Shown here one piece after another: positions 5,246 through 39,303 of a DNA stretch of 64,000 bases. Every line of letters begins with the position of its first letter. Position 1 is the first letter of the stretch. Under the pieces are notes generated by a model. That model did not search any database. It worked only from the letters and a program-made list of their open reading frames with translations, and was not told the origin of the DNA. Location of the stretch: positions 248,001 to 312,000 of IMG/VR virus record IMGVR_UViG_3300042502_001233; one strand, written 5' to 3'. A program made the position numbers and the translations under genes.

Positions 5246-5272
5246 TATATCGCGCGGACCAAACGGATAAGT

Positions 5273-8200
5273 TTATTTGTTTAGTTTACGTTTTACTTCA
5301 GATAGTTGGTCATAAGATAGTTCACTAAATCTATCTATTGGCAATTTATCCATATCGTGATTTAAAAGCAACGTAACACCTTTTAATTCTTCTTGGGTAA
5401 GTTCTTCTACTTGCCAACAATTATCTTCAAGATAGTTCTTTAAAATCGCTTGTTCATCTCGATGTACGTTTGTAAGGTTTACTAATAGTTTCATATAAGT
5501 TTATTTGGTTTGATATGCGCTCCCTCGGGAGCGCATGACACAAATGTGTACATAGGGTTATACTTCTTTCCAAAAACCATCAATTTGTGCAACCGTAATA
5601 GGTGTACCAAAAACTAAATCTTTGATGATATCTTGCTCTTGTAATTTAACAAAGTTTTTTTCTGCTTTCACAATATCTTTAGGTTCATAGTTGCCTTGCA
5701 TTGATGAATTGTTATTCATTATACCATAAACACCTATTTGGTATAATTGTGTTGCAAATGTAATTTTTTGCCCAGTTTCAACGTCAACAAATGAATGTGA
5801 TTTGTGATAAGTAAATTTTTTTAATTTTGCCATTGTGATATAAGTTTAATTGATTATTGAGTGCAAAGATACAACAATATTTGACATATACAAATTTATT
5901 TCGCGCATAGACGCAAATGTGTACATAAGGTTATGTGAATAGCATTTGCATTTCAACTGCTCTAAACCCTAACTCCAACGTTCGTTGTAACGTTGTAATA
6001 TCTTTATTAAGTTTGATTTTCTTATTGATTGATTTAATGCTTCTAACTACATTTCGCATAGTTTTTCTTGCTATGGTACGGCTACGTTTCTTATCGAAAC
6101 CAACATAGTTTCTTTCGTAAACGTGTGCATATCTACCATACGCTTTAAACTTATCCATATCAATAAGGCTATCCAAACTTTTCAATTGGTTTTCCAATCG
6201 AATTAAGTCTTGCTCGAGTGTTATATATAATACATTTTCCATATAAGTTTATGTGATTTTAATATAGTCGCCTTTGGCTAACCATATTTCCATTTCGCCA
6301 TAAGTTAAGATACTTTCCACTTTGCAAGTCATAACCAAATATGATTTATATTCGGGTTCTTTGCTTTTTTTAAGGCTTTTGCGTTCAATACTAAAGTTAT
6401 AGCTTTCAACAACTTTTTGGTACTGATACAACGCTGATTTGCCTTTAAGTTTGGCAACCAACACACCCTCTTTGGTTCTAAATTCTAATTCCATATAAGT
6501 TTATTTAGTCTACAATACCATTACCATAATACAAGTTGAAAGACTTGGCTTTGTAATCGTCAGACTGCAACCATTCTTTGTATTTTGTTTTTATTTGTTC
6601 GTCAGCAAAATCGTAATAGTGTCCGTTGCAATAACGTAACTGATTATTCTTTTTGTAGAATTGTTCAAATAAGTCTATGTCGTTTTCAGCAACAAGTGTT
6701 TCATTACGTTTAAATTCGGGTTTAGTATCTAAATATCTAAAACCACTTTCAGTAACAACTGATTTGTTTGCGGGTGCAAAGTAATTTAATGTAACTTCCA
6801 TTTTGATATAAGTTTAATTGGTTTCCGAGGACAAAGATAGACAAATAAAATAACCTACCAAACTTTTGATAGGTTATTTTTAAATTATTTTTAGATAAGT
6901 TTATTTACAATTACAAAACAAAATCGCCATTATTTCTGATAATGTTTTCACAAATAGCAATCAAACGTTCTTCATCGGTTTCATAGACAATATAAAATAC
7001 ATCTAATTTTGAACACAAAATACTTGATATATCAACAGAACGAATATATTGCTTTCCTTCAAACGCATATTCGATAATTGCTAATTGCTTAAGCGTAAAT
7101 ATTTCAAGCAATTTTTTGTGTGCTACATTATCCTCGTAAGTGCCTAAATAACAAGATTCGTTATAGTTATTTACTCTACCGACATAAGAAGCTAACAATC
7201 CACCTTTGGCACAAACCTCACAAGTAATGCTATTAACATTTTCTTTGTTTACATATGCATTTTGAGGCAATTTAATAATTCTATCTTTTTTCGGTTCTAA
7301 TAACTCTGCTTTGATTCTATCAATACAATCTTGGGCAACCATAACTCTTTTTTCAGCATTACTGCTATTGTTAAAAAGTTCGTTGGTTCTTTCAATTTTT
7401 TTTAGAAAAGCATTTTTTAATTTTTTGCTCATAATGATATAAGTTTAATTGATTTAACGTTGCAAATATAAAAAGAATAAATCATTCTACCAAACATTTT
7501 AACAAAAAAAAGCGTGGGTTTATCAAGTCCACGCTTTCCAACATTAATGTTTAACCAATTATCACTTACAAAATGTGATTTCTTTAAGGTTGCAAATGTA
7601 CAACATTTATTCTATATATAACAAATTTATTTTATAAAAGTTTTACAAGTCGGTTAATATACTTGTTATTCTCAACATACTTCTTTTTATTCTCGTCAAT
7701 CTTGACATCTAACTTTATGTTCTCGATACACAATTTATGATTTTCTTCGTGTTTACTATCGACAAGACTTTTTACCCTTGCAAATAGTTCTGAATAACCA
7801 TTAGCAAAATACAAATGAAACGTATCTTTAAAAAAACGTTGTCCGTTTTCTAAGGTTATTTCACGACTATCATCATACATAACCTTATATGGTTTTCCAA
7901 ATTCAAAACCATAATCGTCGGTTAATGAAATAACTTTTTCGTCAGTCAAATCCATATAAGTTTATTTGATTGGGTTATCTCTACGCCACTTTCTAATTGC
8001 ATCGGTCATTGAATAAAAGATATATCGCATACCTTTGATTTCAACAACGCCACTACGAAACTTATAAGCCGTAACTCCGTTTCTAACTTTTTTCTCTGCT
8101 ACGATTGGTGTAGCATCTAAATACATTGGATAACTCATAACGTATAAGTTTATTCAATTACTTCTACTATATTACAACAACTTGCAAGTTCATCAAGTGG

Positions 8201-9786
8201 TATTCTTTCTCGGTTGCTTGTTGAATAGTAACCTTGAAATTCATAACGCTTTACCCACTCTTGTAGCTTTTGTTCTGCTACTTCTCGACTTGGATAAATT
8301 TCTTCTCTACTGATAGCAAAGCCATCGGGACTAAAAACATCAAATTGTGGCATAATGATATAAGTTTAATTGGTTAACGAGTGCAAATATAATAAATTAA
8401 TTTTAAACTGCCAAACTTTTACCAATCAATTTTAATATCATATTCGCCTTGTTCAAGCAACCCTTTTTTACAAAGGTCGTTAGCTATCATTGAAGCGTGA
8501 GGATAAAAATTTCTTTCCCAAAACATATTGATATGTGATTTATCTTCTTTCCATTCTTTTTCATCCTTATCGGTTTTACCCCAATAGTAACCACATTCTT
8601 TTAGTTCTTCACTACTTGCGTTTAATGTTGCTTTAGGGTCTCTTTCAAGCCACGCTTTGAAACTAACCCCCATTTCAACCCCATTGATTACTTCGGGTAT
8701 GGTATCATTCTCATAATCATTTAATGACTTTTCCTCGGTTGATATGGTTTCAACCCCTCTTTGTTTACAATCATCTTGTTGTTGAAAAGAATAAACTTTA
8801 CCATAAGTTTTTTGTACTAAATTATCCCAATCTTGTACAGATATTTGTTTTCTTGTTTGAATATTCATAATATATTTAATTGGTTTAACGATGCAAATAT
8901 AAACAAAAAATCCACACTACCAAAAATAATGTGGATTTTTTTTTCATATAAGTTTATTCAGTTATTTCTTTAAAGACAAACCTTTGTGGTGGTGTATCTT
9001 CATCTAAATAAACTGCTTCCAAATAAACTTGTTCGTAAGTCAATCCAGCATAACAATTTTTTTGCGTTTCCAAATGAATTGGTGCAAACAAACTATCTGT
9101 ACCCTCTTTTACATTCATCATATGCTTAAAGTTCTTGTCAATGGTCTGCAACTGCCCATAAGGGTTTTCGCCATTGTAACGTTTTCCGTTCTCGATGTTT
9201 TTTGCGGTATTGCAAAACGTTGATGCGTGATAACCTATAACGCTTTCATCTGCAACACGTTTGTAAGCAACAACGTATTGAAATGGTTTTTGTTGGTTTT
9301 CTTCAAAGTTTTTACCCATTGCTTCCATTAACGCACCAACAACTTTTTTGGTTTCTTCGGGTGTTGGTCTTTGGTTTTCTTGTTCTGTATTCATAACGTA
9401 TAAGTTTATTTAATTAAATGTATTAATGTATCTATTCCACTTGCAACAACAACTCCGTTTACTTTGAATGTAATGTAACCCACTACAACCACGTTAGGCG
9501 CACCATAATTGTTTGAATTGTCTATGGTATAACCATAACCGATTGCGGTTATTGAATCACCCTTATTTACGTCTAAACTTATGTGTGATTGTTGTAAATA
9601 AGTAGTTGTGTTTTCTTTAGCATTGTAATACCAAAATTCGGGCGAATTACCCTCAATGAAAACTTCAAGTCTTTTGGTTTCTTCTTGGGTGTTTGGTGTT
9701 TCTTCTGAACTGCACGATGCAAATAAACTAATTAGAATAAGTGCTACTGCTAATAAGATTGCTTTGATAATTAATAATTTTTTCAT
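5273..9786 (-). CDS. Run of ~12 small early hypothetical genes (5273, 5558, 5931, 6249, 6505, 6911, 7632, 8150, 8419, 8954, 9406 lipoprotein, plus a short ORF near 7960-8138)
   Basis: Co-oriented ORFs, most with their own TAnnTTTG box; 9406 has a lipobox (LFASC). Confidence 0.7.
5860..5875 (-). promoter_or_regulatory. Example of the Bacteroidota sigma70-type -7 box TAnnTTTG(C), repeated upstream of dozens of minus-strand genes
   Basis: Plus strand gcaaagatac / gcaaatatac, also near 7462, 8383, 8893, 9815, 11287, 13361, 14481, 17205, 19139, 24263, 58712. Confidence 0.8.
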
Positions 9787-9867
9787 TTTGATATAAGTTT
9801 AATTGATTAACGATGCAAAGATATAAACAATTTTATTAACTACAAAGAAAAACTTTAATTATTTTGC

Positions 9868-9903
9868 AAAAAAAAAGAGAGTGTATGCACACACTCTCTT
9901 TTT
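9868..9903. terminator. Intrinsic terminator
   Basis: aaaaaaaagagagtgt-atgc-acacactctcttttt. Confidence 0.75.
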
Positions 9904-10129
9904 GGCTAGCTATTGTTTTCAGAAATTATCTGAGTCAGTCTTATGTTAATTTGTAAAGCATGAATAAAAAAAGCTTAAAGCTACCTAAAGGTTTTCTCTA
10001 CTTAACAACCATTGAATAAACTTATTCGGGTTGCATTAACAAGGCCTACATTAAATCCTATCTTGTTAATTTTTTTTTGTAAAGATAGGATTTTTTAATA
10101 TTTCGATATATTTATATATAAACAATATT

Positions 10130-10657
10130 ATGACTCCAGAAGAAAAAAAACAATACAAAGCCGAATATCGCAAATTAAATCGTGATAAAATCAATGAATA
10201 CAATAAAATGTATCGTGAAAAAAATAAAGAACGAGATAAGTCTAAAAAACAAGAATACAATAAAAACTATTCCCAAGGTTATAAAGAAACTAGAAATAAT
10301 CGATACAACGAGCGAATGAAGAACGACCCACTTTTTAACTTCAAACAAACCATACGAAATTTAATTAGAGTTTCTACCAAAAAAAATGGTTTTAAAAAAA
10401 TGTCTCGCACTGAACAAATTTTAGGTTGTTCTTATGAAGATTTTTACACTTATTTAGAATCTAAATTTGAATCGTGGATGACGTGGGATAATAAAGGGTT
10501 GTACAACGGCACCCCAAATTATGGTTGGGATATTGACCATATTATCCCAACATCAACTGCAACGACTGAAATTGAAATTATGAAATTAAACCATTACACA
10601 AATTTACAACCATTGTGTAGTTATTATAATCGTGATATTAAAAAAGATAATATTTAG
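10130..10657 (+). CDS. HNH homing endonuclease (opposite strand to its neighbours)
   Basis: ILGCS...WMTWDN.G...WDIDHIIP...NHYTNLQPLC. Confidence 0.85.
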   Translation: MTPEEKKQYKAEYRKLNRDKINEYNKMYREKNKERDKSKKQEYNKNYSQGYKETRNNRYNERMKNDPLFNFKQTIRNLIRVSTKKNGFKKMSRTEQILGCSYEDFYTYLESKFESWMTWDNKGLYNGTPNYGWDIDHIIPTSTATTEIEIMKLNHYTNLQPLCSYYNRDIKKDNI

Positions 10658-13393: not shown

Positions 13394-14095
13394 TTATTTA
13401 AAACATTCTGTTGAACTACCATTAAATTTTAATAGCGGTACGTACCTATTTTTGCTTTTTAATCTTTTAAATCTTTTTTCTAAATCCCATATATAAGCTA
13501 AGTCGTTTGATACAACTTCTTTTATTATCTCAAATTTATACGGCATATGTTCTTTATGTGAATAACGTTTCTTTGTTGTTGTAGAAGTTATCCCAAACTT
13601 ATAAAACTCTTCCGTATCGTTGTAACATTTGATAATGTAAAAAACACCTTGCCTACCTTTGGCTTTAGCAATCCAATCATTTTTTTTAAGTGTGCTATAC
13701 ATATATCCGCATTCCCTACAACCTTGTTTATTTGTTGTGTGTGAAGCAGCTTTAATATCAAACTCACCATGAATAGGACAAACAATTTTAACTTTGTTTC
13801 TAGCGGTAGTGTATTCAGTTTTGGTATAATCGTATTTATCACCATGAACATCTTTAGCTTGTTGGATAAACTTATTTGTTTCACTTCTGCGATTATCTCT
13901 ATTAATGTAACCACATTGTTTGCAACCTTGTCCCTCCCAATGGTTTTTTGGTGATATAGTAAAATCACCATGCAATTTGCACGTTACTATAATATTAACA
14001 CGTTTATTAACGTATTCGGTTTTAGAATAGTCGTACTTATCACCATGAATAAGTTTAGCTCGTTTTAATAGTTCAATTGTATCTAATTTTTTCAT
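13394..14095 (-). CDS. Homing endonuclease with CxxHG (DUF723-like) repeats and GIY-YIG-like C-terminus
   Basis: HGDKYDYSK...CPIHG repeats; FYII...YKFGIT. Confidence 0.75.
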   Translation of the reverse strand: MKKLDTIELLKRAKLIHGDKYDYSKTEYVNKRVNIIVTCKLHGDFTISPKNHWEGQGCKQCGYINRDNRRSETNKFIQQAKDVHGDKYDYTKTEYTTARNKVKIVCPIHGEFDIKAASHTTNKQGCRECGYMYSTLKKNDWIAKAKGRQGVFYIIKCYNDTEEFYKFGITSTTTKKRYSHKEHMPYKFEIIKEVVSNDLAYIWDLEKRFKRLKSKNRYVPLLKFNGSSTECFK

Positions 14096-16836: not shown

Positions 16837-18220
16837 TTAGTCTTTAGCTGCAAATAAATCAGCTAACGCTTTGATTTGTTTAATCTTTACTTTGACAGCT
16901 TTGGCTGTCATAAGATGAGCTGTTTCACTTTGATATCCATCCCAATAAGGTAAATGGATTAATTGTACTGGTTTAATAGCTGCCACCATGTATTCAGCAC
17001 TACCGTCAGCAACTGGAAAATGAATAACTTCTCCAACACATTCTTGGTCAGGGTTACGCTTAATGCACCAATCTTTTAATCTTGCTGTTAAATCAGCACA
17101 ATCTTTTTTGTATTGTTCGATATTTTCCCAATTAAATTCAGGTGCTTCGAATCCTTCTGGTAATGTATAAACTTTTGCCATTGTTATAGTGTTTAAATTA
17201 GAATGCAAATATAAAACATATATTTTAAATATGCAAATTATTTTTAATTAAAATCCTGAACCAATTTCCTGTGGCTCAAACAAACCCCACTTCTCCATAA
17301 GCTTATCCGTTATCTTAAGAGATTCATCTAAGAACCTAAGTTCCTTTTCAGTCTTGAGACCGAAATATTTTATAATTCCTTCTCTATCATTTTTTTCATA
17401 AACGATATGACTATGAATCAATTGTTTTGTTTCGATTGGAAGACTGGCGCACTCTGGCAAACCAGTCTTCATATAGTTATTTTTGTATGACATAAGTTTA
17501 TTTAGTTTTTATAGGTGACCTCCATTTTGGTTTTCAGGGTCACTGAATCCCCATTCGTCCTCATCGTCGTATAAGATAGCTTTATCCAACGCGTATCCAA
17601 CACGCTCGTTCAAGTCTTCATTCTCTATCAAGTAATCTTGAATATCGTCATCGCCAATTGAGTTGGGTACATCTACCTCAAATGCTACCTGTTTGCTGTA
17701 GTAACGTGTTACGGTTACTGTTACTTTACGTGTATCTGACATAAGTTTATGCGTTTTCATGTTCCTGTTTGGTTACGAAAGCCTCAAAGTCTACAGCGTT
17801 GCCGTCAAACAAAAGTCTACGTTTGTTGCTATATGAACCGTCTCTTTTTATATATCCAATCTCATAACACTTCAACGTTATTTGTTTGGTATCAAAGTCA
17901 ACCAATACATGGTACTCATACTCTTCACCAACATCTTTGGCGTTGTTTGAATAGATATAAAAACCACCTGCACTATCACCCTTGAAATGTGATATCATTT
18001 GCGCTGCGAAACATCCAGCACCATTAAACACTTTGCTTGTTTCGTTACAGCTGATACCATTAACCACAATACCTGACTTGATGAAATCTGCCAGTTCCTG
18101 TCCGTGACCGCTTGGGTATCCGTCAAATTGACGATACATAGTTAAAAGTTTCTCCTGTTTTTGTTTGCCGTTATCGTCGTTCCATACTTCGATAACTCTT
18201 GTTAATGAACGTGTTCCCAT
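16837..18220 (-). CDS. Four hypothetical genes (16837, 17248, 17509, 17747; the last probably starts MGTRS at 18220)
   Basis: ORF track; MGTR...Y...DGYP motif in 17747. Confidence 0.65.
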
Positions 18221-18376
18221 AATGAATATTATTTTAATTGTTAATTGAATGCAAATGTATGAATAAAATTTTACATAACCAAATATATACAAAGATTTTT
18301 AACCTGCAAACTTTTTTTAAACTTTTTTAATATTTTTTTATAGGGCCATATTGCAGGCCCCATAAAACAAATAAGT

Positions 18377-19108
18377 TTATTTGGTTTTGATTGCAAACCC
18401 ACTAGCAAAAGCCAATAAGTTTTTTTCACGACCACCTTTGCCAGTATTCTTTTTATACTTCAAACCGACAATAACGTTTTTTTCATCTAAAAAACGCAAA
18501 TCATCCAAATCACCGTTTATAACTTTGAAACCTTTGTACGTTTCAGGTAATTTGTCAAATACCATTGCAACATTAAACCCACGCTCCAATAAACCCATTG
18601 CTATAGTATCATTAGTTTCAGAACGTGAAAATGTTAAATGATAATTACTAGGTAACACTTTGTCAAAACGCAAATAGTTTTTAGTGTAATCGTAAAATTG
18701 TACATCAGGAAACAATTCGAAGATATTTTTACCGTCGAAGATTTTATACTTCTCATAAGGTAAATCACTAGTACCATTTAAACGAAATGTAACAATTGCT
18801 TTATCTTTGTTTTTATCGATAGCTTTTTGAACTTCACCTTTAAGCTTATTCAAAAAAGAAACCCTATCTTTGAGAAAAAATTCTGTTTTGTTTAATCGAC
18901 CCTGCATAACACTAGTATACATACCACCAAAGCCACTACCAACAAGACAACTATCTGCACACCCCTTAGAGGCGTGACTACATACGTTTATACCTTTGCT
19001 GTTTGCAGTGAACGGTGACATATACAATATGAAAGTCATATAGCCAAGCTTTTCACCTTTGATTGTTTTTGCATTGTTTGTACTCAATAACGGTTTTGTA
19101 AATTCCAT
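18377..19108 (-). CDS. Phage Gp88-like protein
   Basis: C.HAS.GC...CL, FRLNGTSD, QFYDYTK, YHLTFS, GD..DLRF motifs. Confidence 0.7.
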   Translation of the reverse strand: MEFTKPLLSTNNAKTIKGEKLGYMTFILYMSPFTANSKGINVCSHASKGCADSCLVGSGFGGMYTSVMQGRLNKTEFFLKDRVSFLNKLKGEVQKAIDKNKDKAIVTFRLNGTSDLPYEKYKIFDGKNIFELFPDVQFYDYTKNYLRFDKVLPSNYHLTFSRSETNDTIAMGLLERGFNVAMVFDKLPETYKGFKVINGDLDDLRFLDEKNVIVGLKYKKNTGKGGREKNLLAFASGFAIKTK

Positions 19109-19149
19109 AATAAAAATGTTTAATTGATTAATTCGAGTGCAAATATATG

Positions 19150-20025
19150 AATAGATTTTTAATATGCAAACTTTTACCTGGAAATTTTTATTTTTTTTTC
19201 AGGACCATACATATAAGCTTATACGTATATATTTCATTTGCGCATTGCTACACATTCTGTAGCATTCCGCAAACAGGATATACGGCCATGGCCCCAGCAG
19301 CCCGCTGCATCCTTCAGGCCAGAACCTTCACACATACATACATGTGATGACGCCAGCGCCAGCAAATATGCGGGTTAAGCTTTACCTCTTCAGGTCCCTG
19401 CAAAAATAATTGAAAAAAAGTATGCATGTTACTTGCATATGAAAAATCTCCATAGCACATTTGTCCCATGAAAATATCAGCACTGTGCAACAGCTGCACA
19501 ATACATCCCGCATTGCGGGACCAGATTTCTTTTGCCTATATGCAAATAAGTTTATTTGTTTTACCATCTCAGGCCATGCAGCGCCCGCTGCTCAAGATGC
19601 GCCCAGAATTCTCCATGGCGCCATAATCCCATCACCCGCGTGGGCTAGACACAAAAGTGTACATTCATGTCCGATGGCCATCATGGCCTAGCGGCACATA
19701 CAGGGTACCTTGCAATGCATAGTAGTTTAAAATTTTGGCTGAAAAAGTGGCGTGTGTTTTTGAAGGGGATAAAGCTTTCTTCCATATATCTTTTACGCCC
19801 ATAACTACCTCATAATCATCATTTCCATTTTTATGGGTGTGTTTTCAAGTATTTTTATTCGTTTTTACCATTTTTTTCCACATTTTACCACAAACTCCCA
19901 CGGGAATTGCTGCTTGTGCGTGTGGGTACATTTAGGAACGTATTAAAATACTATACATATATATTTTCATATGTATTATGAATGTATGTATATACGCATT
20001 CCATGTACACAAAAGTGTACATATA
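19150..20025. other. ~870-bp non-coding, locally GC-rich element with palindromes; second boundary of the early block
   Basis: No credible ORFs; tggcca/catg/tgca palindromes; ATGTACAC-AAAA-GTGTACAT at 20003-20022. Confidence 0.55.
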
Positions 20026-20027
20026 TG

Positions 20028-20402
20028 TTACCAGCATTTTAACAATTTCAGTTTATAGTTTTTATCATTTACATTATCTGGGTAATAGTGTAGGTCTATG
20101 GTATCCAATGTATCTTTGACTATTATGACAATTTTTATTTCTTCATAGTCATCATCAACGAGTCTATAAAAGAAGGTATTTTTTTTAATAAAAAATTGTT
20201 TTGACACTACATAAAGATTTTGTTCTTTGTATGGGGTTGTTATGTTTACTTCATATTTATCGAACACAACTTTTCCTATGGTATTTATTTCGTTCCATCC
20301 TTGTGGTGTTTTTATTTCTATGTAGTGAAATTCATATGTTCCTTCTAAGGTTTGTCCAAACGATGATAATGATAATAGTGTTAATAGTATTATATATTTC
20401 AT
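20028..20402 (-). CDS. Secreted hypothetical protein
   Basis: Bacteroidota-style signal peptide (MKYIILLTLLSLSSFGQ). Confidence 0.65.
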   Translation of the reverse strand: MKYIILLTLLSLSSFGQTLEGTYEFHYIEIKTPQGWNEINTIGKVVFDKYEVNITTPYKEQNLYVVSKQFFIKKNTFFYRLVDDDYEEIKIVIIVKDTLDTIDLHYYPDNVNDKNYKLKLLKCW

Positions 20403-20936
20403 TTTTTTTTTCTTAGTGTTTCTTCTTCTTGTTCTTTATCTTCTCCAAATAAATCATCACCTTTATAGTCTGGATGTTTTTCATGCATATCAGTAATTCC
20501 TTTAACCCAAAGAATACATATTATAAAAACGACTAGTATTGTTATTAGTATTCCCATGTTACTTATTTCTGAAATTAAGATAGGTTAGACCCAACATTAG
20601 GATGTTTGTTATTGGGTTAAGTAGTCTATCGTTATATGCGTAGCATACGATGTTTCCTATTACTAGCATTGCTATAGCGATTGCTCCGAATATGTGATTT
20701 GTTTTCATGATGTTTGTACTTTTTCTATTTGATTGGTTTTGTGATTGAACAACAAGTCGTCTCCTATGTGTTCGTATAGTGTTCCGTTCTTCTCAAAGGT
20801 TTTGCCATGTTTTTTTGACTTGGTTATTTCTTTGAGGGTTGTTGATGCGTCTTCGCACCAATGTCTTTGTGGTTGTTTTGCCATGGTTTATAGTATTATG
20901 ATGCAAATATACTACATTGTTTTTATATATGCAAAT

Positions 20937-21023
20937 TTATCTTGCAATATATACTTTTTCAATGTATACCAGAACGTTGTACTGATAACCGTTGTATTGA
21001 TGATATCCTAATTTATCTTGCAT
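20937..21023 (-). CDS. Truncated YAR-array unit (28 aa, MQDKLG...YIAR)
   Basis: Manual translation; not in the ORF track. Confidence 0.5.
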   Translation of the reverse strand: MQDKLGYHQYNGYQYNVLVYIEKVYIAR

Positions 21024-21997
21024 AATATATTTGGTCTTTTAAATTACTTTCATAATAATAGCTTATCCATAAACCAAATTGTTCACCATTGATATAATTC
21101 CCTATATTGCATAGATTTCCATTTGTCCAATACCATTCCCACAATCCGTGGCGTTGGCTTCTTCTATATGGTTTTTTATCTTGCATGGTATTCATGTTGT
21201 TCTCTTATTTCTCTGTTGTATCTAAGCAACGGTCTATAGTATAGATATCCGTAAGGTTCATCATTTATGAAATGAGTTTGAAGGAATATGTCACCAGTGT
21301 TTGCTGCATGCCATCGCCAATATCCGTGACGTTCACCTTGTTTGTTTCTTGGTGTAATATCGTTATCTTGCATAGTATTCATAACTTATTTTTCCAGTGT
21401 GCCAATGGAATTCTTTATATCCAACACTTACACCATCTATATAGTTTTTTATATAGTATAGTCCTCCATTATCGTGATATACCATCCATTTTCCGTTGCG
21501 ATTTTTGTGTTCGTTTTTTTGGTTTATTTTATATTGCATGATATACTGTTTCTGAATATTTGCCACAATTAAATTCATAATACCCATGCAATTTTCCGTA
21601 GATGTAGTGCGATATACTTAATAGTTTTCCATTTGACCAATATATAACATGTTGACCAATTTGATTACCGTTTGCGTATGAGCCTTTATCGTGTAACTGA
21701 CCGTTATCATGATATCTTTCCCAATAACCGTGTCTTTGTTTTTGTTTGTTTCTTGGTGTGATGTCTTTATCTTGCATAGTATAATTCATTTCCTATGTGT
21801 TCACAAAACCCATATATTGTCCTATTTAACATATTGCATTTCAACGTTAAACTACCATCTTCTGAATATGATTCATAGGGTCCAACAACATCACTGTTAA
21901 CAAATAACCCTTTAAAATGTAGCGTTCCATTGGAATAATATACTTCCCAATACCCATGGGCTTGATTTTGATTGTTAAATGGTTTGTTATCTTGCAT
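21013..21997 (-). CDS. Five overlapping MORN-variant/YwqK-like paralogs (stops at 21013, 21176, 21363, 21529, 21767)
   Basis: MQD..P.N...HG.W..Y..NG.....Y.NG...G......YYAR pattern. Confidence 0.75.
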
Positions 21998-22163
21998 AGT
22001 ATTCTATTATTCCTGAACTATTATAATAACTCCAATGTTCAAAGTACCCAAATTCTTCTCCGTTTATGTAGTGACCTTTGTACCATAAGTTATTGTTATC
22101 ATGATGTACCACCCAATAACCATGGGGTTCTTTTTTTTCGTTATGGGGTGTCTTATCTTGCAT
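21987..22163 (-). CDS. YAR-array unit (58 aa, MQDKTPHNEKKEPHGYW...EYYAR)
   Basis: Manual translation; below the ORF-track cutoff. Confidence 0.75.
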   Translation of the reverse strand: MQDKTPHNEKKEPHGYWVVHHDNNNLWYKGHYINGEEFGYFEHWSYYNSSGIIEYYAR

Positions 22164-22329
22164 AGTACGTTCTTTCGTTTATATAGTTATCAGCTACTCG
22201 GTACCATATCCAACCACCTAGAACTTCACCATTGACAACGTTACCACATACACGGTATGTTGGGTTCCAGCTGGTATCCCAAAATCCATGGGCTTATCCT
22301 AATAAGTTAGTTGGTTCTTTATCTTGCAT
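22153..22329 (-). pseudogene. YAR-array unit with in-frame TAA at 22294-22296
   Basis: MQDKEPTNLLG*AHGFW...TYYAR. Confidence 0.7.
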
Positions 22330-22501
22330 AGTAAAAACTTGTTATTAATTCTTCTTTGACTCCATAGTGGGCGCTGTGTCCAAACATTCTACCATTGATA
22401 TAGTTATAGGTGTTGGACATATTACCGTTAGCCCAACGATATATCCATAGCCCATAGGCTGCACCTCTTTCGTTTCTTTTGTTTGTTTCTTTATTTTCCA
22501 T
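22319..22501 (-). CDS. YAR-array unit
   Basis: Ends FYYAR. Confidence 0.75.
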   Translation of the reverse strand: MENKETNKRNERGAAYGLWIYRWANGNMSNTYNYINGRMFGHSAHYGVKEELITSFYYAR

Positions 22502-22537
22502 AATAAAAAAGGGTAGCTAAACGCTACCCTTATTTGA

Positions 22538-22771
22538 TTAGTCCCAAGCGTTTTGTAGCTTTTTGGTTACTGGGTTCAACTCTTGTTGAACGTACTTGAT
22601 AACGTTAGGTGATTCGATAGCGATTGTTCCATGCTCTCCGTGCAAAACTTGGCTGTTTTTTCCAGCTTTGATTTTAAGAATGTTCTCATCGATTTTCTCA
22701 ACTTCTACAACGTTAGTCATTGTGTGCGTGTTTGTGCTAGGTTCTAGCACGATAGTCTTCTGATTTCCCAT
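22538..22771 (-). CDS. His-motif (H.EH) hypothetical protein lying within the array
   Basis: THTM...HGEHG...QQELNP; own promoter and downstream hairpin (22505-22532). Confidence 0.65.
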   Translation of the reverse strand: MGNQKTIVLEPSTNTHTMTNVVEVEKIDENILKIKAGKNSQVLHGEHGTIAIESPNVIKYVQQELNPVTKKLQNAWD

Positions 22772-22844
22772 GTTTTTTTATTTTTAAATGGTTTGTTATA
22801 ATTACAGTACAAATATACTACTTAATTTTTAATTGTGCAAATTT

Positions 22845-23404
22845 TTATCGACAAAAATAAAATTTATTACTTGGTAATTCTTTAAATGAGCGAGTTACTT
22901 CAGTATACCCATATGCTACTCCGTTAACATAGTGTGAAGTTTCCCATGGTCGCCCATCAACCCGATAGTCTTGAAATGGACCGTGTAGTTCTCCTTTTTC
23001 GTTTCTTGGTGATTTATCTCGCATAGTATTCCTCACTTTCTATATTGTTGGATTTGTTTCTCCAAATAAAATAACCGTATCCATCATCATTAAAATAATG
23101 ACCTATACAGAAAGCAACACCGTTGGACCAATAATCTTCCCAACGTCCGTGACGTTGGTATTTATCGTTAAGTGGTTTTTTATCTTGCATAATACTCTTT
23201 TACATAAAATGATTCACCATCTTCCTCATTTTCATAATATATGGAATAACCATATTCAACACCGTTAATGTTGTGGTCCATAAACCATATAGTACCATTA
23301 CCTAAATAACATATCCATTGACCATGTGGTTGTCCTTGTTCGTTACGTGGCTCTTGATTAACTGGCATAATAACTTTTATTTGTCGTTTTGTTTTATCAT
23401 ACAT
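22845..23404 (-). CDS. Three further YAR-array units (22845-23024, 23014-23190, 23180-23404)
   Basis: 23014-23190 translated by hand: MQDKKPLNDKYQRHGRW...EYYAR. Confidence 0.75.
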
Positions 23405-23464
23405 TAGTAAAAAAAATCACACACCTATTACGAGCGTGTGGTTTTTCGTGGGAATAAAAATGTG

Positions 23465-24238
23465 TTATGATTGTGCTACCAACAAACCAAAGTATTGTTC
23501 TTTGGTAAGAGACACCATTTCTCCTTCTGGTTTAACATCTTCGTCCATTTCAGTAAGCAAGATGTCGCCTTGGCGTTTCAATGCTTTGATATAAGGGATA
23601 ATGTTTTTGTGAACAACAAACGTTGATGCAATCGCTGTAAGTGGGTCGTCTTTGTATTGGTCGTCAATCCATAACCAATGTTCTTTGTTGGTTGACGTAC
23701 ACCAGCATTTTACTGCGTATAGTGATTCTTCAAGACCTAACTTCTTGCCTTCTATTTCGTGAGTTTCGTAGATGTTGTCATATTCTTCAACGCCAGTGAA
23801 ATTACCCTCAGCATCATATTGTCTATGATTAACTTTGACACCATCAGTTTTGATTCTTTTGGCACCCAACTCGTTAATCATTTGAGGGATATCAATTGAC
23901 GAGAACACCAATGCTTGGAACTCTCTACCCTCTAACTCAAACGATTCTTTGAATGTAAACGGTTCTACTGTGTCGTACATTTCAGCAAGACTGTCGAAGA
24001 ATTTTACAGTTTTGTCGTAATCGATTTCTGATACTTCTTTAAGCCCAGCGATTTGATGTTCTGGGTATCCGTTAAGGAAAATGTTTTTCTTTACGTTGAT
24101 GAAACGATTCATAAATCGCTCATAGTTTGTATGAACACCTTTAAGGTATTTTACCAATTCAGTTGGGGTACAACCTACCATTTGTTCTGTGTCAGTTTCG
24201 AAGTAGACACCATTGAATGCTGTGAAAATGATTTTCAT
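23465..24238 (-). CDS. Hypothetical protein with C.ST...W...A.A.TF...RQGD motif (DUF6745-like)
   Basis: Motif recall only. Confidence 0.5.
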   Translation of the reverse strand: MKIIFTAFNGVYFETDTEQMVGCTPTELVKYLKGVHTNYERFMNRFINVKKNIFLNGYPEHQIAGLKEVSEIDYDKTVKFFDSLAEMYDTVEPFTFKESFELEGREFQALVFSSIDIPQMINELGAKRIKTDGVKVNHRQYDAEGNFTGVEEYDNIYETHEIEGKKLGLEESLYAVKCWCTSTNKEHWLWIDDQYKDDPLTAIASTFVVHKNIIPYIKALKRQGDILLTEMDEDVKPEGEMVSLTKEQYFGLLVAQS

Positions 24239-24313
24239 ATGTTATTGTTATTTAATTACAGTGCAAATATACTATATTGTTTTTATACTTGCAAATATTT
24301 TTTGATTTTTTTT

Positions 24314-27300
24314 TTATTCTATGGTTATTTGTGTTTTGTCACTGTATTGGTGTGCATCATAACCATCGATTCCGTTTTGTTCAAAATCAGCATCGTTAAG
24401 CCAATAAACATGTCCATTGTCTTTAACACATTTTACTATGTGTCTGGAACCTGAGTTCCATATGGTGTAGTTTCCTTTGGGTAGTTTTTCAACCAACCCC
24501 ATATCATTTTTGTCTTTTGGACCATTGCAATTTACCATCCCTATTATCATACCTAACGAGAATAAGAATACGATTGCAAATGTTTTAAGTTCTTTCATAG
24601 TTATTCGATTATTGTTTTACCACAGCTCATACATGTTCCGTGTGGTTTGTTATATATTCTTTGGCGACAAACTCATGGTCACATGGTTGTTCTTCTAGTA
24701 TTTCACCACGTTCGATTTCTTCTTTTCGATTTAACAAATCAATTTTTTCCATGACTTTGCTTGTGACAAATTTCTTTGTGAATGTTGGTGATTCAATATC
24801 GATTGATAATTTGAATATTTCATCAAATTCAAAATATTCAATGGTTGGTCCCCACAACAAGTATTTTTTTTTAGTTTTAATTATAGGTGTTGAATTGTAG
24901 AAAATTGTTTCTTCCCATCCGCTAACGTCGTGGTCACCTGAATAACGATTAATTTCGTATAGATATTCTCTACCTTTTATTGTTATTTTTTTCATGGTTT
25001 TTGTGCTATTATTACATTTTCTATTCTTACTTTGAGTCTTTCAGCATCTCGTTTGTTCCCGATGATAACACCGTTTACTATTGAAAACGCGTGACCGCTT
25101 ACGATAACCAAGTATCTACCAATTGGTCGTTGTTTTAGAAACATACCAACAGTTATCTTGTAGTTCTTATCATCTTTGTTATCATATAAACCTATACGAC
25201 TTTTTGAACCCTTGTAGGTTAGGTCCCAATGAGGGATATAATCTATTTCATATTCGCCAATCTTATACCCAGCTTTATTTAGGTCTAGAAATATTGGATA
25301 AACGGACATAGTTCCACGTTGTGGTTTTCTTTTGAATTTATCGGCAGCTATAGCATGCGCATCATCATAAGGTACCCCAAACGTTTCTGTAATGGCTCTC
25401 ACCACGCAGTCGTTTCTTTCTCTACCAGATTTTTTGCTATCTTTGTAGCTTTTTGGCCATGTTGTTGATTTGACTTCCATATAAATTTATTTTACCAATC
25501 GTAGCCTTCGTATGTTATGCCGACCTTTCTTAGCTTGTGTTTAAGCCTTGAAGGCAAATTTTTCATTCGTATCATACCACCTAGTCTATTTTCCCATAAC
25601 AGCGGCCATTCTTTTTTGGTTGTTGTGGTAAATGCCTCAGCAACTTTTCTACACCCAAGACACTCAAACCCTTCTGGGGCTAGTATTCTGTTTGTAATTA
25701 ACCTATTGGTAGTTGGGTTGTAGTAGCAATATGTATGTGTTGTTCTACCCATACTGACTAGTTATTTAATTCATCGAAAGTAGCCACACCATCTTTGATA
25801 GTTACAACTACTCTAAACCCAATACCTCTAACACCTTCTTCGGTTGTTAGTTCATAGGTCTTACCTTTGTAATTTATTTCAATTACATAACCACCCCAAA
25901 GTCCTTGATACGAACCATCAGGAAGTGTTGTTACTTGTGGTACTTTCTCTTTGATTGATAAAATTTTATTTGACATAAGTTTATTTGTTAAAGTATTTTT
26001 AAATTTATTAAATATCCATAGCGCATTCATGGGTACAATAATCACAACAGTTACATAAGCTTTCGCTGTCATTATGTATATCCTCTGCGTAAGGACATGT
26101 GTGTAATTCGTTATAATCACCGCAAGTACATTTTGTGTTTTCTGTCATATTTAGTTTTATTTTTACCTAGTAACTTTTTTCTTGTTTTTTATTATTGGTT
26201 TTGGTTTCTCTTTTGGTTTCTCTATGATGCTGTCTTTCCATTCAACCATTTCATAGTAAAAGTCCAGAGCTATTAATTTATTTTTTCTGGTTACTACCAA
26301 CGTACCAGTAACTTTGGCTTTACTTATGTTGAGAACCAATTTCTTGGTTGACATTTTCTTGTTTAAATATCGTCTGACGATTGTATCACATACTTCGATA
26401 CGTATAGTTCCTTTGGCTTTGTGATTGGAAAATATAAGTGTGGAATCTACAATCTTACCAGTTCCAACGATACCTTCGTAGCCACGTTCATAATATTCAA
26501 CCGTCTGACCGAACGCCAGTGTTGATAACAGAAGAAATATAATCGTTAGTTTCATTACGTTATCATTAATTTTTTAAGTTCTTTAGGTGTTTTAAAATCT
26601 TGTATATCACCAACTTTACATTTGATGTAAGGGTTATACAGCCAATTTTCTTTAACAGATAACACACCAGTTTTGTTTATCTTGTTAGCGTAATATGTAA
26701 TAGAAGAAAAATCTTTATTCGTTATTTTTTTACTACTATTGAAACTAAAATACATATCTGGGAAACTATGGTTAAATGATAGTTTTTCTCTTTCAAAAAA
26801 AGAATAGCTAACGTTTTTAATAACATAAAAGTCGTTATGTGTTGTTTTGATAATATCACCAACTTTATATCCTTTACTACCAATAAAATCATTTAAAACT
26901 TTATCAAATTTCTCACCGTATTCATGTACGATTGGTTGAATTGCTGATTGAAATTCTGATTTTAAAACTTCAAGTTTGTTAGCATATTTAGTTTTAGGGT
27001 TATCAAACACTGTTACTGCGTCTTTGAGCATCTTTAAATTATTTGCTTTGTACCAATCATCATGGTCTTTTTCATCATAACCTTCCAATATTGTATCATA
27101 ATCAATATCGTTTAAATTATGTGTAATGTAATAGGTTCTACTGAAACCGCCAGTACCTACTATTTCGTTTACCTCGAAATCTTCTAAATTTTCTCTTTTT
27201 GATATGTTATAATAATCCGTTGTTGAACGAACACTATCACCACCCACAAAAAAATACTGTTTAGTTACTTCTAATTCTTCCATTTCAATAATTTTTGCAA

Positions 27301-32468: not shown

Positions 32469-33275
32469 TTAAATCGGTAAATTAATTTTACTTAAAATTT
32501 GATTTGATACGTGTGTATATATTTCAGTGGTTTTTACGTTAGCATGACCTAAACATTTTTGTATAATTCTTAAATCAGTACCAGCTTCCAACAGAGCGGT
32601 GGCTTGTGAATGTCTTAACAAATGAAAATGATATTCTTCACCAATATATTTTTTAACTATTTCATTACAACTTCTATGAGAATATTGTAAATTGTTACCT
32701 TGACCATTAAACAAATATTCTTTAGGTTTATACACTTTAAAATATTCACGCAAAAGATTTAAAACAATTGGTGACAAGGGAACGAATCTATCTTTTCTTC
32801 CTTTACTGTTTTTAATGTGTATTAACATTCGTTTACTATCAATATCTTCAATTTTTAAATTACACAATTCAGAAACTCGCATTCCTGTTGAATACGCTAA
32901 TGTAAGTATAGCTTTGTGTTTAATGTTTTCGATTTTAGATAATTTTTCGAGCAGAAACTCCTTTTCGATTATTTTTGGTAATTTTTTCTCTTTTCGTGGT
33001 CTTTTAAACGAAACCTTATCGTATTTTCTTTCTAATCCGTATTTATATAAAAACCTTATTGCGTTTATAACTTGATTTTGTTGTGAAACAGACGTGAATT
33101 TGTAATTATCTAAGTAATTCTGAAAATCTTTAGAATTTAAGTGAGCGACTTGTTTGTCCCCTACATTTTTAATGAAAGAGATAATGTGATACATATAATT
33201 TTCTTTTGTTCGTGGCGAGTAGTTAAGATATATAAACTTTTGTTCACAAATCTTTATAATTTTTTCGTTTAACAT
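32469..33275 (-). CDS. Integron-integrase-like tyrosine recombinase (short form, no IntI insertion)
   Basis: SQQNQVINAIRFLY, RPRKEKKLP, GMRVSE, KGRKDR, HLLRHS, LGH, TTEIYTHV; likely start MLNEK at 33275. Confidence 0.9.
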   Translation of the reverse strand: MLNEKIIKICEQKFIYLNYSPRTKENYMYHIISFIKNVGDKQVAHLNSKDFQNYLDNYKFTSVSQQNQVINAIRFLYKYGLERKYDKVSFKRPRKEKKLPKIIEKEFLLEKLSKIENIKHKAILTLAYSTGMRVSELCNLKIEDIDSKRMLIHIKNSKGRKDRFVPLSPIVLNLLREYFKVYKPKEYLFNGQGNNLQYSHRSCNEIVKKYIGEEYHFHLLRHSQATALLEAGTDLRIIQKCLGHANVKTTEIYTHVSNQILSKINLPI

Positions 33276-33294
33276 ACTGATTTTATTAATGGTT

Positions 33295-33325
33295 TGAGAT
33301 GTTTTTACATATATTATAGTTAGCA
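33295..33325 (+). other. Candidate attI-like site (crossover G|TT at 33319)
   Basis: First cassette starts GTTAGCACC just upstream of the integrase, with no attC hairpin to its left. Confidence 0.65.
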
Positions 33326-33331
33326 CCAATA

Positions 33332-33808: not shown

Positions 33809-33862
33809 ATTTTTACTTATAAATATTCCAAATTTAAAATTCTACCAAATAAACCGTAATGG

Positions 33863-33957
33863 TGCTAACAAGGTGTATAAGAAAGTTTGCTATCAAGTTC
33901 AGTGGTAAATTTGAAAGTTCCTATAAGCAAACCTTCTCATACACCCAATCGTTATAT
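33863..33957 (+). repeat. attC-like site 1 (family A)
   Basis: TAAC 33866, arms GGTGTATAAGAAAGTTTGCT / AGCAAACCTTCTCATACACC, GTT 33951. Confidence 0.9.
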
Positions 33958-33972
33958 TCAATATCAAAAATT

Positions 33973-34765: not shown

Positions 34766-34820
34766 TACTAACAGCGTATAAAAAACATTAAAACGATTTT
34801 TTATACGCAAACCGTTATAA
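34766..34820 (+). repeat. attC-like site 3 (family B)
   Basis: TAAC 34769, GCGTATAAAAAA / TTTTTTATACGC, same acattaaaacga loop as site 2, GTT 34814. Confidence 0.85.
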
Positions 34821-34826
34821 CCAATA

Positions 34827-36731
34827 CTACTTTTCGTCTCCGTAAATTGGCATATATCTTTCATCGTAACCAACGATTTTTCTATGTTTATTATCATCAA
34901 TGTATTTATCATCAGCATTTTTTTGTTGGTCAAACTCTTCTTTAAGTTTGATTAACCCATCTCTTAGTTCTTTTGGCAAAAGAGATTCATCAGCTAAAAT
35001 TTCTTGTCTGATTTGTTCGTGTTTTTGGTGAATATTATTCCCATGTTCAATTATTTTTTCTATTTTATTCTCCATATTTTTAATTTTTAAAACATTCAAT
35101 TAGTTTAATACTTGGTAAATTCCAAACATCAATTATTTTATAATCTGAACCATCAGTATTTGTTAGTATGATATTATTCGGTTCAATTTTGAAATCTGTT
35201 CTTATACAAATACCAAGGTTTTTATCGTTTTCTCTAATAAGAAAAAATGGTTCAAAACTTTTACTAACATCAGCTTTGTATCTTTTATAATTATAAACAT
35301 CATGTTCACCTATAATATGAAAATCTTTAAAATTATCAAATATAACACAAATCTGTCCAGATGCTATAACAACATCTAAATCAAATTCTTTCATATAATA
35401 CCTAACGAAACTATTTAAACTTTCGTTATGTTCAAGTTGTGTAATATCATTATTTGGTTTTTTATAATCCCAAACATAATCTTTTACTTTATCAACATTT
35501 TTTTCATATTCCTTAAATGTTTTATATTCAAGTCTTTTTAATATTTCTTCCATATTTTAATATTTTAACAATAAATCATTCAATTCTATATCTAAACCAA
35601 ATAATGATTTTTCAATCACTTCACGTATTGTTAATGTTGGTTCATCTTTCATAATATTTAAACAAATTAACATTAGCTCATTTGTTCTATCTGTTTGGTT
35701 GGTGAATTTAATCACATAATCAATATATTTTAAATCATCAAAATGTTCCATATTTTTAATTTTCATATATTTTAAAAATTTCTTCAATTTTAACTATTTT
35801 ATTACCAAATAAAACTTTATCACCAATAAACTCGTATTTAGAAATAAGATAATTTTCAAACCAATGTAAAAAAATAACAATATCTTGGTATGAATATTCA
35901 CTTTCAATATCCATAAATATTTTATGGTCTAAAAACATCCCAATAGGGTAGTAAACCCAATCATCTGGATTTCTACTATCTACTTCATCCACTAATTCCC
36001 TACAAAAAGATAAATCATTAAAATGATGATTATATACGTGAGGCTCATACCCACCAATTTTATTTTTATATGGTAAATTTAAACTCTTAATAAAATAAGG
36101 TTTTTTTTCATAATTGACATTAGATTCATATAATGAATTACGAAGTTTTAGTTTAAGTTTTTCTAACTTTTTATCGTAGTTGGTATTTGTCTTCGCAACA
36201 AATCCTTTATTTTTAAATTCTTCAACTTCTTCATCTGAACAATCTTCAACCCATTTAATATCAATATCAATAAGTTCTGTTTCTACTGAAGTGTCATCGT
36301 TTATTTTAGTTTCTCCACGATAGGCAAATGGTATTAAACCATTTTCTGGTATTTTAAAATTTTTTTCCATATTTTATAAATTTATTTTATTGATTAATTG
36401 GATATATGAGTTAATAGGTAATTTTTCAGATAAATATTTTTTTATTATTTCTGAATTATTGTATTTTTTTGGGTTATCCAAAAACTCAAAAAGAATTTCT
36501 TTAAATAAATCTTTTTCAATATCACTTTCACTACAATAACTCATAAAATCACCAAATGATGGTATGAAAGTATTAATATCAGTCATTATTATTTATATGT
36601 TTTAGTATTTCTTTAATAACATCTACCCATTGATTGGTTTCAGTTATATGTTTAATTTTGTTTTCTGAAAAAGAAGATACTTGTCTAAGACCTTCTTTAT
36701 CTGTAATAATAATCTCCATTTTATTTTCCAT
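34827..36731 (-). CDS. Cassette 4: operon of six ORFs (34827, 35080, 35557, 35756, 36374 and a short ORF near 36586-36731)
   Basis: ORF track; own TATATTTG promoter box near 36746. Confidence 0.7.
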
Positions 36732-36800
36732 AATTTATTTTTTTTACAAATATACTAATTATTATTCAATTAATCAAGTTTTATCTTAAAATCACCGTAC

Positions 36801-36824
36801 TGGTTATAACAAATGTTATAACCA
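36801..36824 (+). repeat. Collapsed attC-like site 4
   Basis: tggttaTAAC-aaat-GTTataacca; no hairpin body. Confidence 0.7.
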
Positions 36825-36827
36825 ATA

Positions 36828-37849: not shown

Positions 37850-37921
37850 AATTTATTTTTTTTACAAATATACTAATAATTATTCAATTAGTCAAGTTTT
37901 ATCTTAAATTCACCGTACTGG

Positions 37922-38015
37922 TTATAACAAGGTGTATAAGAAAGTTTGCTATTAAGTTTAGTTGTAATTTGAAAGTTCATCTAAGCAAACCTTCTCATAC
38001 ACCCAATCGTTATGT
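37922..38015 (+). repeat. attC-like site 5 (family A)
   Basis: TAAC 37925, GTT 38009. Confidence 0.9.
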
Positions 38016-38091
38016 GTAAGTGTGAGTTCCCTCTCCGAATTAACTTTTGTGTTAGAAAATTTTAGAAAAAAGAACCCACCGCACATATTTT

Positions 38092-39297: not shown

Positions 39298-39303
39298 CCA
39301 ATA

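Follow-up and report, generated by a model that had tools for sequence, protein, structure and literature searches.

A chained array of diversified MORN_2-type mini-genes in a jumbo phage: a candidate library of small binding proteins

Introduction

Why would a phage keep a dozen short genes of a single family, strongly diverged from one another, with most of them starting inside the end of the gene before? The question is raised by an array at positions 20937-23404 of a 64,000-nucleotide (nt) stretch of DNA (hereafter the window: bases 248001-312000 of IMG/VR virus record IMGVR_UViG_3300042502_001233; unit coordinates are window positions), which is part of a genome of 362,018 bp (362 kb) and 31.4% GC. 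A first-pass annotation, made from the sequence of the window, had described twelve MORN/YwqK-like mini-genes chained by a short dual-coding junction and had proposed an expandable library of small binding or immunity-like proteins. The answer reached here is that a freshwater jumbo phage carries an old MORN_2 family with fast turnover, whose units are probably diversified small binders expressed from an operon by read-through and translational coupling. The anatomy and coding logic of the array are given with high confidence and the proposed translational coupling by termination-reinitiation with moderate confidence; an inhibitory, immunity-like function would be the most likely role of the units.

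Architecture of the array

Inspection of the open reading frames (ORFs) in the window bore out the twelve units, all of which lie on the minus strand and read from 23404 towards 20937. Nine are intact ORFs of 57-82 amino acids (aa; U2-U4 and U6-U11), U1 is a fusion with a relic, U5 carries a nonsense codon and U12 is a stub:

U1, 23404-23180, minus strand: 74-aa ORF in which the first codons of a leading unit (otherwise deleted) are joined to a complete unit
U2, 23190-23014, minus strand: intact, 58 aa, two MORN repeats; 11-nt overlap with U1
U3, 23024-22845, minus strand: intact, 59 aa; starts MRD (ATGCGAGATAA) and ends YFCR; closes sub-array 1
U4, 22501-22319, minus strand: intact, 60 aa; starts MEN; opens sub-array 2
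U5, 22329-22153, minus strand: TAA nonsense codon at 22296-22294, which is codon 12
U6, 22163-21987, minus strand: intact, 58 aa
U7, 21997-21767, minus strand: intact, 76 aa, three repeats; above the Pfam MORN_2 cut-off
U8, 21777-21529, minus strand: intact, 82 aa, three repeats; ends YHAI; above the MORN_2 cut-off
U9, 21539-21363, minus strand: intact, 58 aa; starts MQY
U10, 21373-21176, minus strand: intact, 65 aa; ends YHAR
U11, 21186-21013, minus strand: intact, 57 aa; above the MORN_2 cut-off; structure modelled
U12, 21023-20937, minus strand: 28-aa stub between direct repeats of TGCAAGATAAAT

Two of these, U6 and U2 (ending at 21987 and 23014), are the intact units that the first-pass annotation had found missing from its ORF track, and each is indeed a 58-aa ORF. 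The picture of one continuous chain needs amendment: ten consecutive pairs overlap by exactly 11 nt, but an unrelated 77-aa gene separates U3 from U4, so that the array is in two parts of 3 + 9 units (U1-U3 and U4-U12). The C-terminus of U3 (YFCR) contains no embedded ATG, and this unit type is widely kept among relatives.

Decay is evident at three places. The complete unit in U1 originally began with the ATG at 23368; loss of 131 nt from within the relic upstream of it brought the relic's ATG into frame with U1, and the C-terminus of the deleted leading unit (KSYYAS-stop) can be read in another frame. The nonsense allele noted earlier at 22153 is the TAA at codon 12 of U5, a position occupied by Glu in the intact orthologues of two relatives (L013 and L015, introduced below). 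The truncated unit noted at 20937 is U12, whose last junction copy has ATT instead of ATG. Contigs from three other lake samples (2020-2024) were identical to the window array, including the TAA of U5 and with no unit gained or lost, and the reduced form is therefore a stable strain genotype; a fourth run (X9) gave short-sided joints among related strains only and was judged unreliable. The interiors of the units are as strongly diverged as had been claimed (25-47% identity between paralogous proteins in the window), and since no pair exceeds 47% nothing points to recent duplication or homogenization. A search of the 362-kb genome with a profile of the units found no further copies outside the array.

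The 11-nt junction is dual-coding

The 11-mer ATGCAAGATAA occurs eight times in the window, always inside the array and on one strand, and elsewhere in the 362,018-bp genome at only two sites (genome positions 71928 and 116977), both in unrelated ORFs. When the junction was extended to a 12-mer and up to one mismatch was allowed, nine copies were found in the array, again on one strand, against 0.77 expected from shuffled sequences, and none of 100 shuffles reached nine. Eight of the ten overlaps consist of this 11-mer, the U2/U3 overlap being ATGCGAGATAA and the U8/U9 overlap ATGCAATATAA. Across five related arrays the overlap is 11 nt in 96 of 102 adjacent pairs and 14 nt, through one inserted codon, in two. 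Each following gene takes its ATG from the Tyr-Ala codons (TAT-GCN) in the C-terminal Y-Y-A-R-stop of the gene before it, so the same letters encode the end of one protein and the start of the next, as had been proposed.

Codon tallies within the 96 pairs overlapping by 11 nt indicate which of the two readings is constrained:

Penultimate Tyr codon: TAT 51, TAC 41 (free)
Ala codon: GCA 72, GCG 14, GCT 5, GCC 4
Last residue: Arg 81 (AGA 70, AGG 5, CGC 5, CGA 1), Lys 7
Upstream stop codon: TAA 88, TAG 7, TGA 1
Second residue encoded downstream: Q, R, L, P, H
Third residue encoded downstream: D, N, G, A, Y

Variation falls where the upstream frame is degenerate, and residues 2-3 of the downstream protein change accordingly. 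A check that avoids circularity comes from the 18 units without an overlapping successor, 12 of which have lost the ATG (Tyr replaced by Phe, Ile, Cys or Thr, or Ala by Cys) while keeping a basic last residue. This check and the pattern of codon degeneracy show that the features of the junction under selection are the upstream C-terminal motif and the embedded start codon, the 'MQD' of the downstream protein being largely a by-product. The reported conservation of the junction thus stands as far as eight identical copies in ten go, but it reflects mainly coding constraint (Y-Y-A-R is encoded with synonymous Ala codons and two Arg codon families), with residues 2-3 of the next protein varying freely.

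Each gene lies in the +1 frame relative to the preceding one and the junction is nearly invariant, which could be read as repeated programmed +1 frameshifting, or bypass of the stop codons, to yield one long protein. This is most improbable: 96 of 102 junctions have an ATG at exactly one and the same position, and this ATG is lost where no gene follows, the stop codons vary (TAA, TAG, TGA), no slippery or stimulatory element is conserved outside the coding motif, and gene callers and databases list the units as separate proteins of 55-85 aa.

Proposed read-through and translational coupling

Promoter-like motifs of the form TTTG-N17-22-TAnnTTTG number 31 on the minus strand and five on the plus strand. 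ORFs show no excess of Shine-Dalgarno-like 4-mers in front of them (1.9%, compared with 3.3% for random 14-mers); their leaders are rich in A, which occupies position -3 in 69% of cases. From the promoters and the lack of Shine-Dalgarno use, read with what is established about promoters and initiation in Bacteroidota, we infer a Bacteroidota host. Around the array the following elements were found:

24295-24264, minus strand: promoter of the 257-aa gene
24238-23465, minus strand: 257-aa gene, a conserved flank (98% identical in L009) and the anchor for synteny
23440-23418, minus strand: terminator-like hairpin followed by T8, between the 257-aa gene and U1
22841-22810, minus strand: Bacteroidota-type promoter (TTTG-N19-TAnnTTTG) of the 77-aa gene, directly after the U3 stop
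22771-22538, minus strand: 77-aa gene, unrelated to the units (97% identical in L009; ratio of nonsynonymous to synonymous substitution rates, dN/dS, 0.03)
22531-22509, minus strand: strong, intrinsic-terminator-like hairpin of 9 bp (5 GC), its T-run reaching the U4 start codon
20935-20904, minus strand: end of the array, marked by the promoter of the gene that follows (20884-20705); the -33 element of this promoter begins inside the U12 stop codon

The 77-aa gene stands at the same place in four phages and matched no family beyond widespread phage 'hypothetical' clusters. Neither this gene nor the terminators before the two sub-arrays had figured in the first-pass annotation. The promoters at 24295, 22841 and 20935 are the only ones near the array, and no TAnnTTTG occurs within either sub-array of the window. 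U1 and U4 have no promoter and each begins right after a hairpin and T-run, which places each sub-array in the read-through zone of a conserved, promoter-driven gene; transcription of each would then proceed by read-through from the promoter of the gene in front. Within the sub-arrays the same-strand stops and starts overlap with no internal promoter and no Shine-Dalgarno use, the layout of a coupled operon. A ribosome stopping at TAA might restart at the ATG 8 nt upstream, a scheme that would suit initiation without Shine-Dalgarno sites, and the penultimate Tyr codon supplies the favoured A at -3 of the next start.

In the related arrays two non-overlapping gaps were seen within long arrays and a TAnnTTTG motif lies in each, so the overlap is dispensed with where a promoter is present. 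One unit type (L015 5252-5449 and L009 3612-3803, array coordinates) follows a 24-nt non-overlapping gap that holds the motif, which suggests an internal restart of transcription in arrays of at least 20 units.

The familiar coupling by ATGA or TAATG overlaps is likewise on one strand, with the start inside the end of the preceding gene and no intercistronic initiation signal. The array differs in that its overlap is 11 nt, in another reading phase, and, being made from a conserved protein motif, stays fixed over about 100 junctions. It could therefore serve as a clean natural system for studying termination-reinitiation without Shine-Dalgarno sites.

Unit turnover among related phages

Searches with a DNA pattern of two junctions and with the protein of the 257-aa flanking gene, together with look-ups of identical proteins, recovered syntenic loci. 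Four have the same gene order (257-aa gene, short sub-array, 77-aa gene, long sub-array) and differ in the number of units:

Window, 362-kb genome: 3 + 9 = 12 units
L009, 76-kb contig with a flank 98% identical: 5 + 15 = 20 units
L013, 340.7-kb contig: 4 + 18 = 22 units
L015, NCBI GCA_902726325.1, 338.8 kb: 4 + 37 = 41 units

The window array is the smallest of the four. In a more distant clade (flank 78% identical) single units lie near the 257-aa gene and a 16-unit array lies about 7.5 kb off. Near-identical DNA to that of the window was found in lake-water metagenomes, while a megablast of window positions 18000-26000 against 50,697 GenBank phages gave no match. A word-indexed search of metagenomes returned 169 small homologues in two classes, MQD...YYAR as here and a class ending in YYI, many of them named 'YwqK antitoxin' by JGI. 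Genes of the YYI class are also found, placed singly, at 1-10198 of a 289.7-kb freshwater huge phage contig (L017; JGI 3300031787 Ga0315900_10000016), interleaved with several other small multi-copy families (83, 107, 131 and 155 aa). Almost all of these genes overlap their neighbours by 4 nt (ATGA), a chained layout like that of the array but reached in another way.

Neither the number nor the order of units is fixed among the relatives, a comparison that the first-pass annotation had named as decisive for its expandable library. The five arrays together hold 116 units, whose reading frames are open apart from two breaks; single-linkage clustering at 55% identity sorts them into 80 types, 61 of these confined to one genome. 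Eight window units have orthologues by reciprocal best matches (identity in brackets): U1 with L015_03 (81%), U2 with L013_03 (72%), U3 with L009_05 (73%), U4 with L015_09 (83%), U5 with L015_10 (75%), U6 with L009_09 (62%), U10 with L013_19 (79%) and U11 with L009_20 (90%). Orthologue order is mostly collinear with some local swaps. The library is thus expandable in that 12, 20, 22 and 41 units of differing content occur, but the diversity of the units is old paralogy, with turnover by gain and loss of whole units rather than recent expansion.

For four whole-unit insertions or deletions (indels) both endpoints fall within the junction repeat. The second leading unit of L015 is missing from the window, the deletion running from one TTATTATGC to the next; the U12 stub, between its two TGCAAGATAAAT copies, is absent from L009; L015_21 is absent from L009; and L015_11 with L015_12 are absent from the window and L013. 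Most blocks of homology shared by the window and its relatives start 4-18 nt before a unit ATG and stop 10-11 nt after one. Other breaks lie within units: besides the 131-nt deletion in the relic before U1, the neighbours L009_17 and L009_18 are 89% identical in their 5' halves and 40% in the remainder, an N-terminal insertion of 33 nt sets L015_10 apart from its orthologues in the window and L013, and in-frame fusions and units of three to four repeats exist. Since only frame-preserving indels would survive selection, the bias towards the junction fits a microhomology hotspot but does not prove one. The earlier suggestion that the junction is a recombination point is accordingly compatible with the indels but unproven, selection alone being able to produce the same bias. 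Under the preferred reading the short junction together with about 50 nt of conserved 5' coding sequence would provide microhomology for loss, gain and shuffling of units, and such unit-wise turnover would be one way for a phage to maintain a variable gene repertoire with no dedicated recombinase.

An alternative is that the array resembles integron or recombinase-associated AID (rAID) arrays, the junction being the site of a site-specific recombinase that inserts and excises units. Those arrays also consist of short exchangeable genes with a conserved boundary sequence, the junction here bounds whole-unit indels, and the one tyrosine recombinase of the genome lies at 32469-33329 of the window, 9 kb from the array. 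This recombinase is, however, no conserved partner: none was found in four related records (G001-G004), which include the 76-kb contig with its 20-unit array and an 86%-complete 306-kb relative, in keeping with the earlier statement that no recombinase adjoins the array. The boundary is 11-15 nt of coding sequence that has no attC-like structured site; no inverted repeat was seen in it on reading the sequence, although no inverted-repeat scan of the array was made. Its variation tracks codon degeneracy, and the hairpin repeats near the recombinase form an element separate from the array. We regard this explanation as very unlikely and largely refuted.

The hairpin repeat just mentioned is about 98 nt long and is present downstream of the tyrosine recombinase in four copies 88-89% identical (33857-33963, 37916-38021, 39206-39303 and 43080-43177). 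The copy folded (37910-38025, minus strand) gave a hairpin of about 27 bp (-35.5 kcal/mol, z score -6.8), with no match in Rfam. The set is probably the other 'cassette-like system' mentioned in the first-pass annotation. Also next to the recombinase are direct repeats 1-2 kb apart, of 257 nt (88%; 34814-35070 and 36815-37071) and 118 nt (86%; 36704-36821 and 37822-37939), which suggest duplicated small genes or gene ends. A diversity-generating retroelement target was considered for the array as well and is ruled out, the 362-kb genome having no match to a reverse transcriptase (RVT_1).

Selection on the units

Orthologous units differ by synonymous divergence (dS) of 0.3-1.0 and have dN/dS values of 0.11-0.79 (median about 0.3). 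For the 257-aa gene and the 77-aa gene, whose dS is similar, the range is 0.03-0.16. As the frames are open and dN/dS is below 1, the units are real coding genes under purifying selection, weaker than that on their neighbours. Pooled over 21 pairs, dN/dS was 0.23 in conserved columns and 0.43 in variable columns, and each unit type keeps its own variable surface. These values bear on the notion that the array is neutral, decaying repeat DNA, the remains of a broken multi-repeat gene with no present function. The window, with the smallest array and its nonsense allele, relic and stub, might by itself have suggested decay, but dN/dS well under 1 at dS of 0.3-1.0, more than 100 intact frames across five genomes and the 169 small metagenome homologues leave this hardly tenable.

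The units are MORN_2-type mini-proteins

Only three of ten units tested (U7, U8 and U11) passed the Pfam cut-off for MORN_2 (PF07661), a repeat of 22-23 residues with the pattern G-x-W ... Y-x-N-G ... G, five others giving weak scores. PHROGs, NCBIfam and PADLOC returned nothing meaningful for the units, no NCBIfam model matched them as YwqK-type, and a sequence search of the PDB gave weak matches to SET7/9 only. A profile built from ten units, on the other hand, was run against 1.84 billion representative proteins and matched 10,489 of them (E<=1e-3); the top matches were long multi-MORN_2 proteins with 8-18 matching stretches. An AlphaFold2 model of U11, from an alignment of 99 sequences, is an antiparallel meander of four to five strands with a mean predicted local distance difference test (pLDDT) score of 90.6. 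In Foldseek comparisons its PDB matches were the MORN repeats of SET7/9 (root mean square deviation, rmsd, 1.1 A), MORN1, MORN4 and junctophilin, and its top Swiss-Prot match was Bacillus subtilis YwqK (P96723; E 2.9e-3, template modelling (TM) score 0.81 by query, 26% identity), which superposes with an rmsd of 1.0 A over 50 residues. Among viral models (BFVD) the nearest were 56-84-aa 'MORN variant' proteins of uncultured freshwater Caudovirales, followed by MORN families of giant viruses. Because the family profile and the fold agree, the assignment is settled despite the weak Pfam scores of most units: these are MORN_2-type beta-hairpin mini-proteins of two or three repeats each, and the MORN/YwqK-like identity first proposed has been confirmed by hidden Markov model and structure searches. 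The scaffold positions are H13, G14, W16, Y19, Y31-I-N-G34, G38, Y39 and the C-terminal Y-Y-A-R; residues 40-53 vary most, in both sequence and length, and the two ends of every unit are its most conserved stretches.

That last property, with the resemblance of a C-terminal strand plus the N-terminal half-repeat of the next unit to one MORN repeat, raises the idea of a split solenoid in which units join at their edges, whether or not in the order of their genes, to build a long heteromeric MORN beta-sheet resembling those of multi-MORN proteins of about 1,090 aa. The conserved termini would serve as connectors common to all units, with the stoichiometry maintained by coupling; the profile matched most closely long proteins of 12-16 repeats, and natural in-frame fusions and units of three to four repeats point the same way. 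A defined assembly is hard to square, however, with 12-41 units per array and 61 of 80 types confined to one genome, N-terminal residues 2-3 are free to vary, and in the model the monomer alone folds confidently. We therefore consider a split solenoid improbable.

Probable role of the units

We return to separate, mutually different small binders, of which the units would together provide a library. Their most likely role is that of immunity-like inhibitors, directed at toxin-type effectors of the host or of competitors as YwqK is at the YwqJ deaminase. Such a role is suggested by the YwqK-like fold in combination with the open repertoire and the presence or absence of units between near-identical phages, by protein evolution faster than that of the neighbouring genes with type-specific conservation of the variable surface, and by parallels with polyimmunity loci (PMC3482391) and the MORN families of giant viruses.

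Several points weigh against this interpretation of the array. Read-through and reinitiation are deductions from the sequence. The functions of MORN repeats are many, and the argument for the inhibitor role is one of similar fold and of evolutionary pattern. Toxin domains were absent from the neighbours scanned about 3 kb to either side and from the larger ORFs of the window (gene tables likewise list no toxin gene within 6-10 kb of the relatives' loci), no target or defence gene adjoins the array, and no match to a defence family was obtained. Positive selection is unsupported, dN/dS being below 1 everywhere and 0.43 at variable columns. As to turnover, some events break inside units, frame-preserving indels would survive whatever the mechanism, and the strain recovered from three other lake samples over 2020-2024 had no unit variation.

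YwqK of B. subtilis, the antitoxin partner of the LXG toxin YwqJ (PMC8321402), belongs to COG2849 and shares repeat type and fold with the units (MORN_2). It is, however, a single 154-aa gene beside its toxin, whereas here units of about 55-86 aa form phage arrays of 12-41 genes with no toxin nearby and no adjacent LXG/YwqJ-like partner. Polyimmunity loci of polymorphic toxin systems, known in Bacteroidetes, are runs of at least four tandem small immunity-type genes with no toxin (Zhang et al. 2012, PMC3482391). Like the array (12-41 units) they are tandem, toxin-less and variable in content between strains, but they mix many unrelated families, lie in bacterial chromosomes and have ordinary intergenic spacers, whereas the genes here are of a single family, belong to a phage and share a dual-coding overlap fixed at 11 nt.

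The same comparison underlies a second proposal for function, that the array is a polyimmunity island for the host whose orphan immunity genes shield the infected cell from interbacterial toxins (type VI secretion system or contact-dependent) rather than from anti-phage defence. The best structural match, YwqK, is an interbacterial immunity protein (PMC8321402), and toxin-less tandem immunity arrays are known in Bacteroidetes (PMC3482391). Set against this, the known loci mix unrelated families where only one is present here, no prophage context is evident for the 362-kb phage and its sole tyrosine recombinase is not conserved in relatives, and a lytic jumbo phage would gain little by shielding its host from neighbouring cells. 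This proposal seems unlikely to us.

A more far-reaching form of the inhibitor reading, which we put forward only tentatively and think rather doubtful, is a recombinase-free cassette system. Through microhomology at the junction and the conserved 5' segment, whole units would be swapped, lost and gained among co-infecting jumbo phages, drawing on an open pool of at least 80 mini-binder types, each neutralizing a different defence or toxin effector and all expressed from one reinitiation-coupled message. Were it true, phages would have in such arrays their own equivalent of the polyimmunity or defence islands of bacteria. If the units are inhibitors at all, the at least 80 types of predicted binders of 55-85 aa, which fold confidently and are each maintained by purifying selection, would form a panel for finding defence and toxin effectors of freshwater Bacteroidota, and would offer a natural scaffold for small binders.

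Relation to other viral MORN families

Multigene MORN families of giant eukaryotic viruses (Orpheovirus, Pithovirus, Klosneuvirinae and Pandoravirus; PMC5753266, PMC6418002) also represent viral expansion of paralogues with varying number and content, and match the units in structure (TM 0.75-0.85); they belong to another virus realm with other hosts, are mostly longer and are not chained by overlapping starts and stops. The freshwater Caudovirales 'MORN variant' proteins (UniProt A0A6J5M5P7 and neighbours; 56-84 aa, 43-51% identity, TM 0.85-0.89) are near relatives, and their entries consist of annotation only. The protein type is thus already deposited, as 'MORN variant' or 'YwqK antitoxin', and the array belongs both with tandem immunity-like or repeat-protein multigene families and with overlap-coupled operons. 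Literature searches found no description of phage mini-MORN arrays, of the motif-built 11-nt overlap or of the turnover of such arrays.

Other features of the window

A promoter-like element of about 47 nt (TTTGCA-N19-TAGTATATTTG) occurs in at least 13 copies before minus-strand genes of the window, for example at 24295, 22841, 20935, 19170, 18310 and 58749. The window also encodes a sigma-70 family protein (51923-52801), an RNase II/R-like protein with RNB and S1 domains (62714-63997, minus strand) and two tRNA genes (56704-56802 and 57593-57666, minus strand). DNA repeats of 72-74 nt are present within and between the ORFs at 46472-47605 and 13394-14095, both on the minus strand; the 377-aa ORF of this pair has matches to treble-clef zinc-finger, DUF723 and CapR-like proteins, which marks it as a repeated-module protein.

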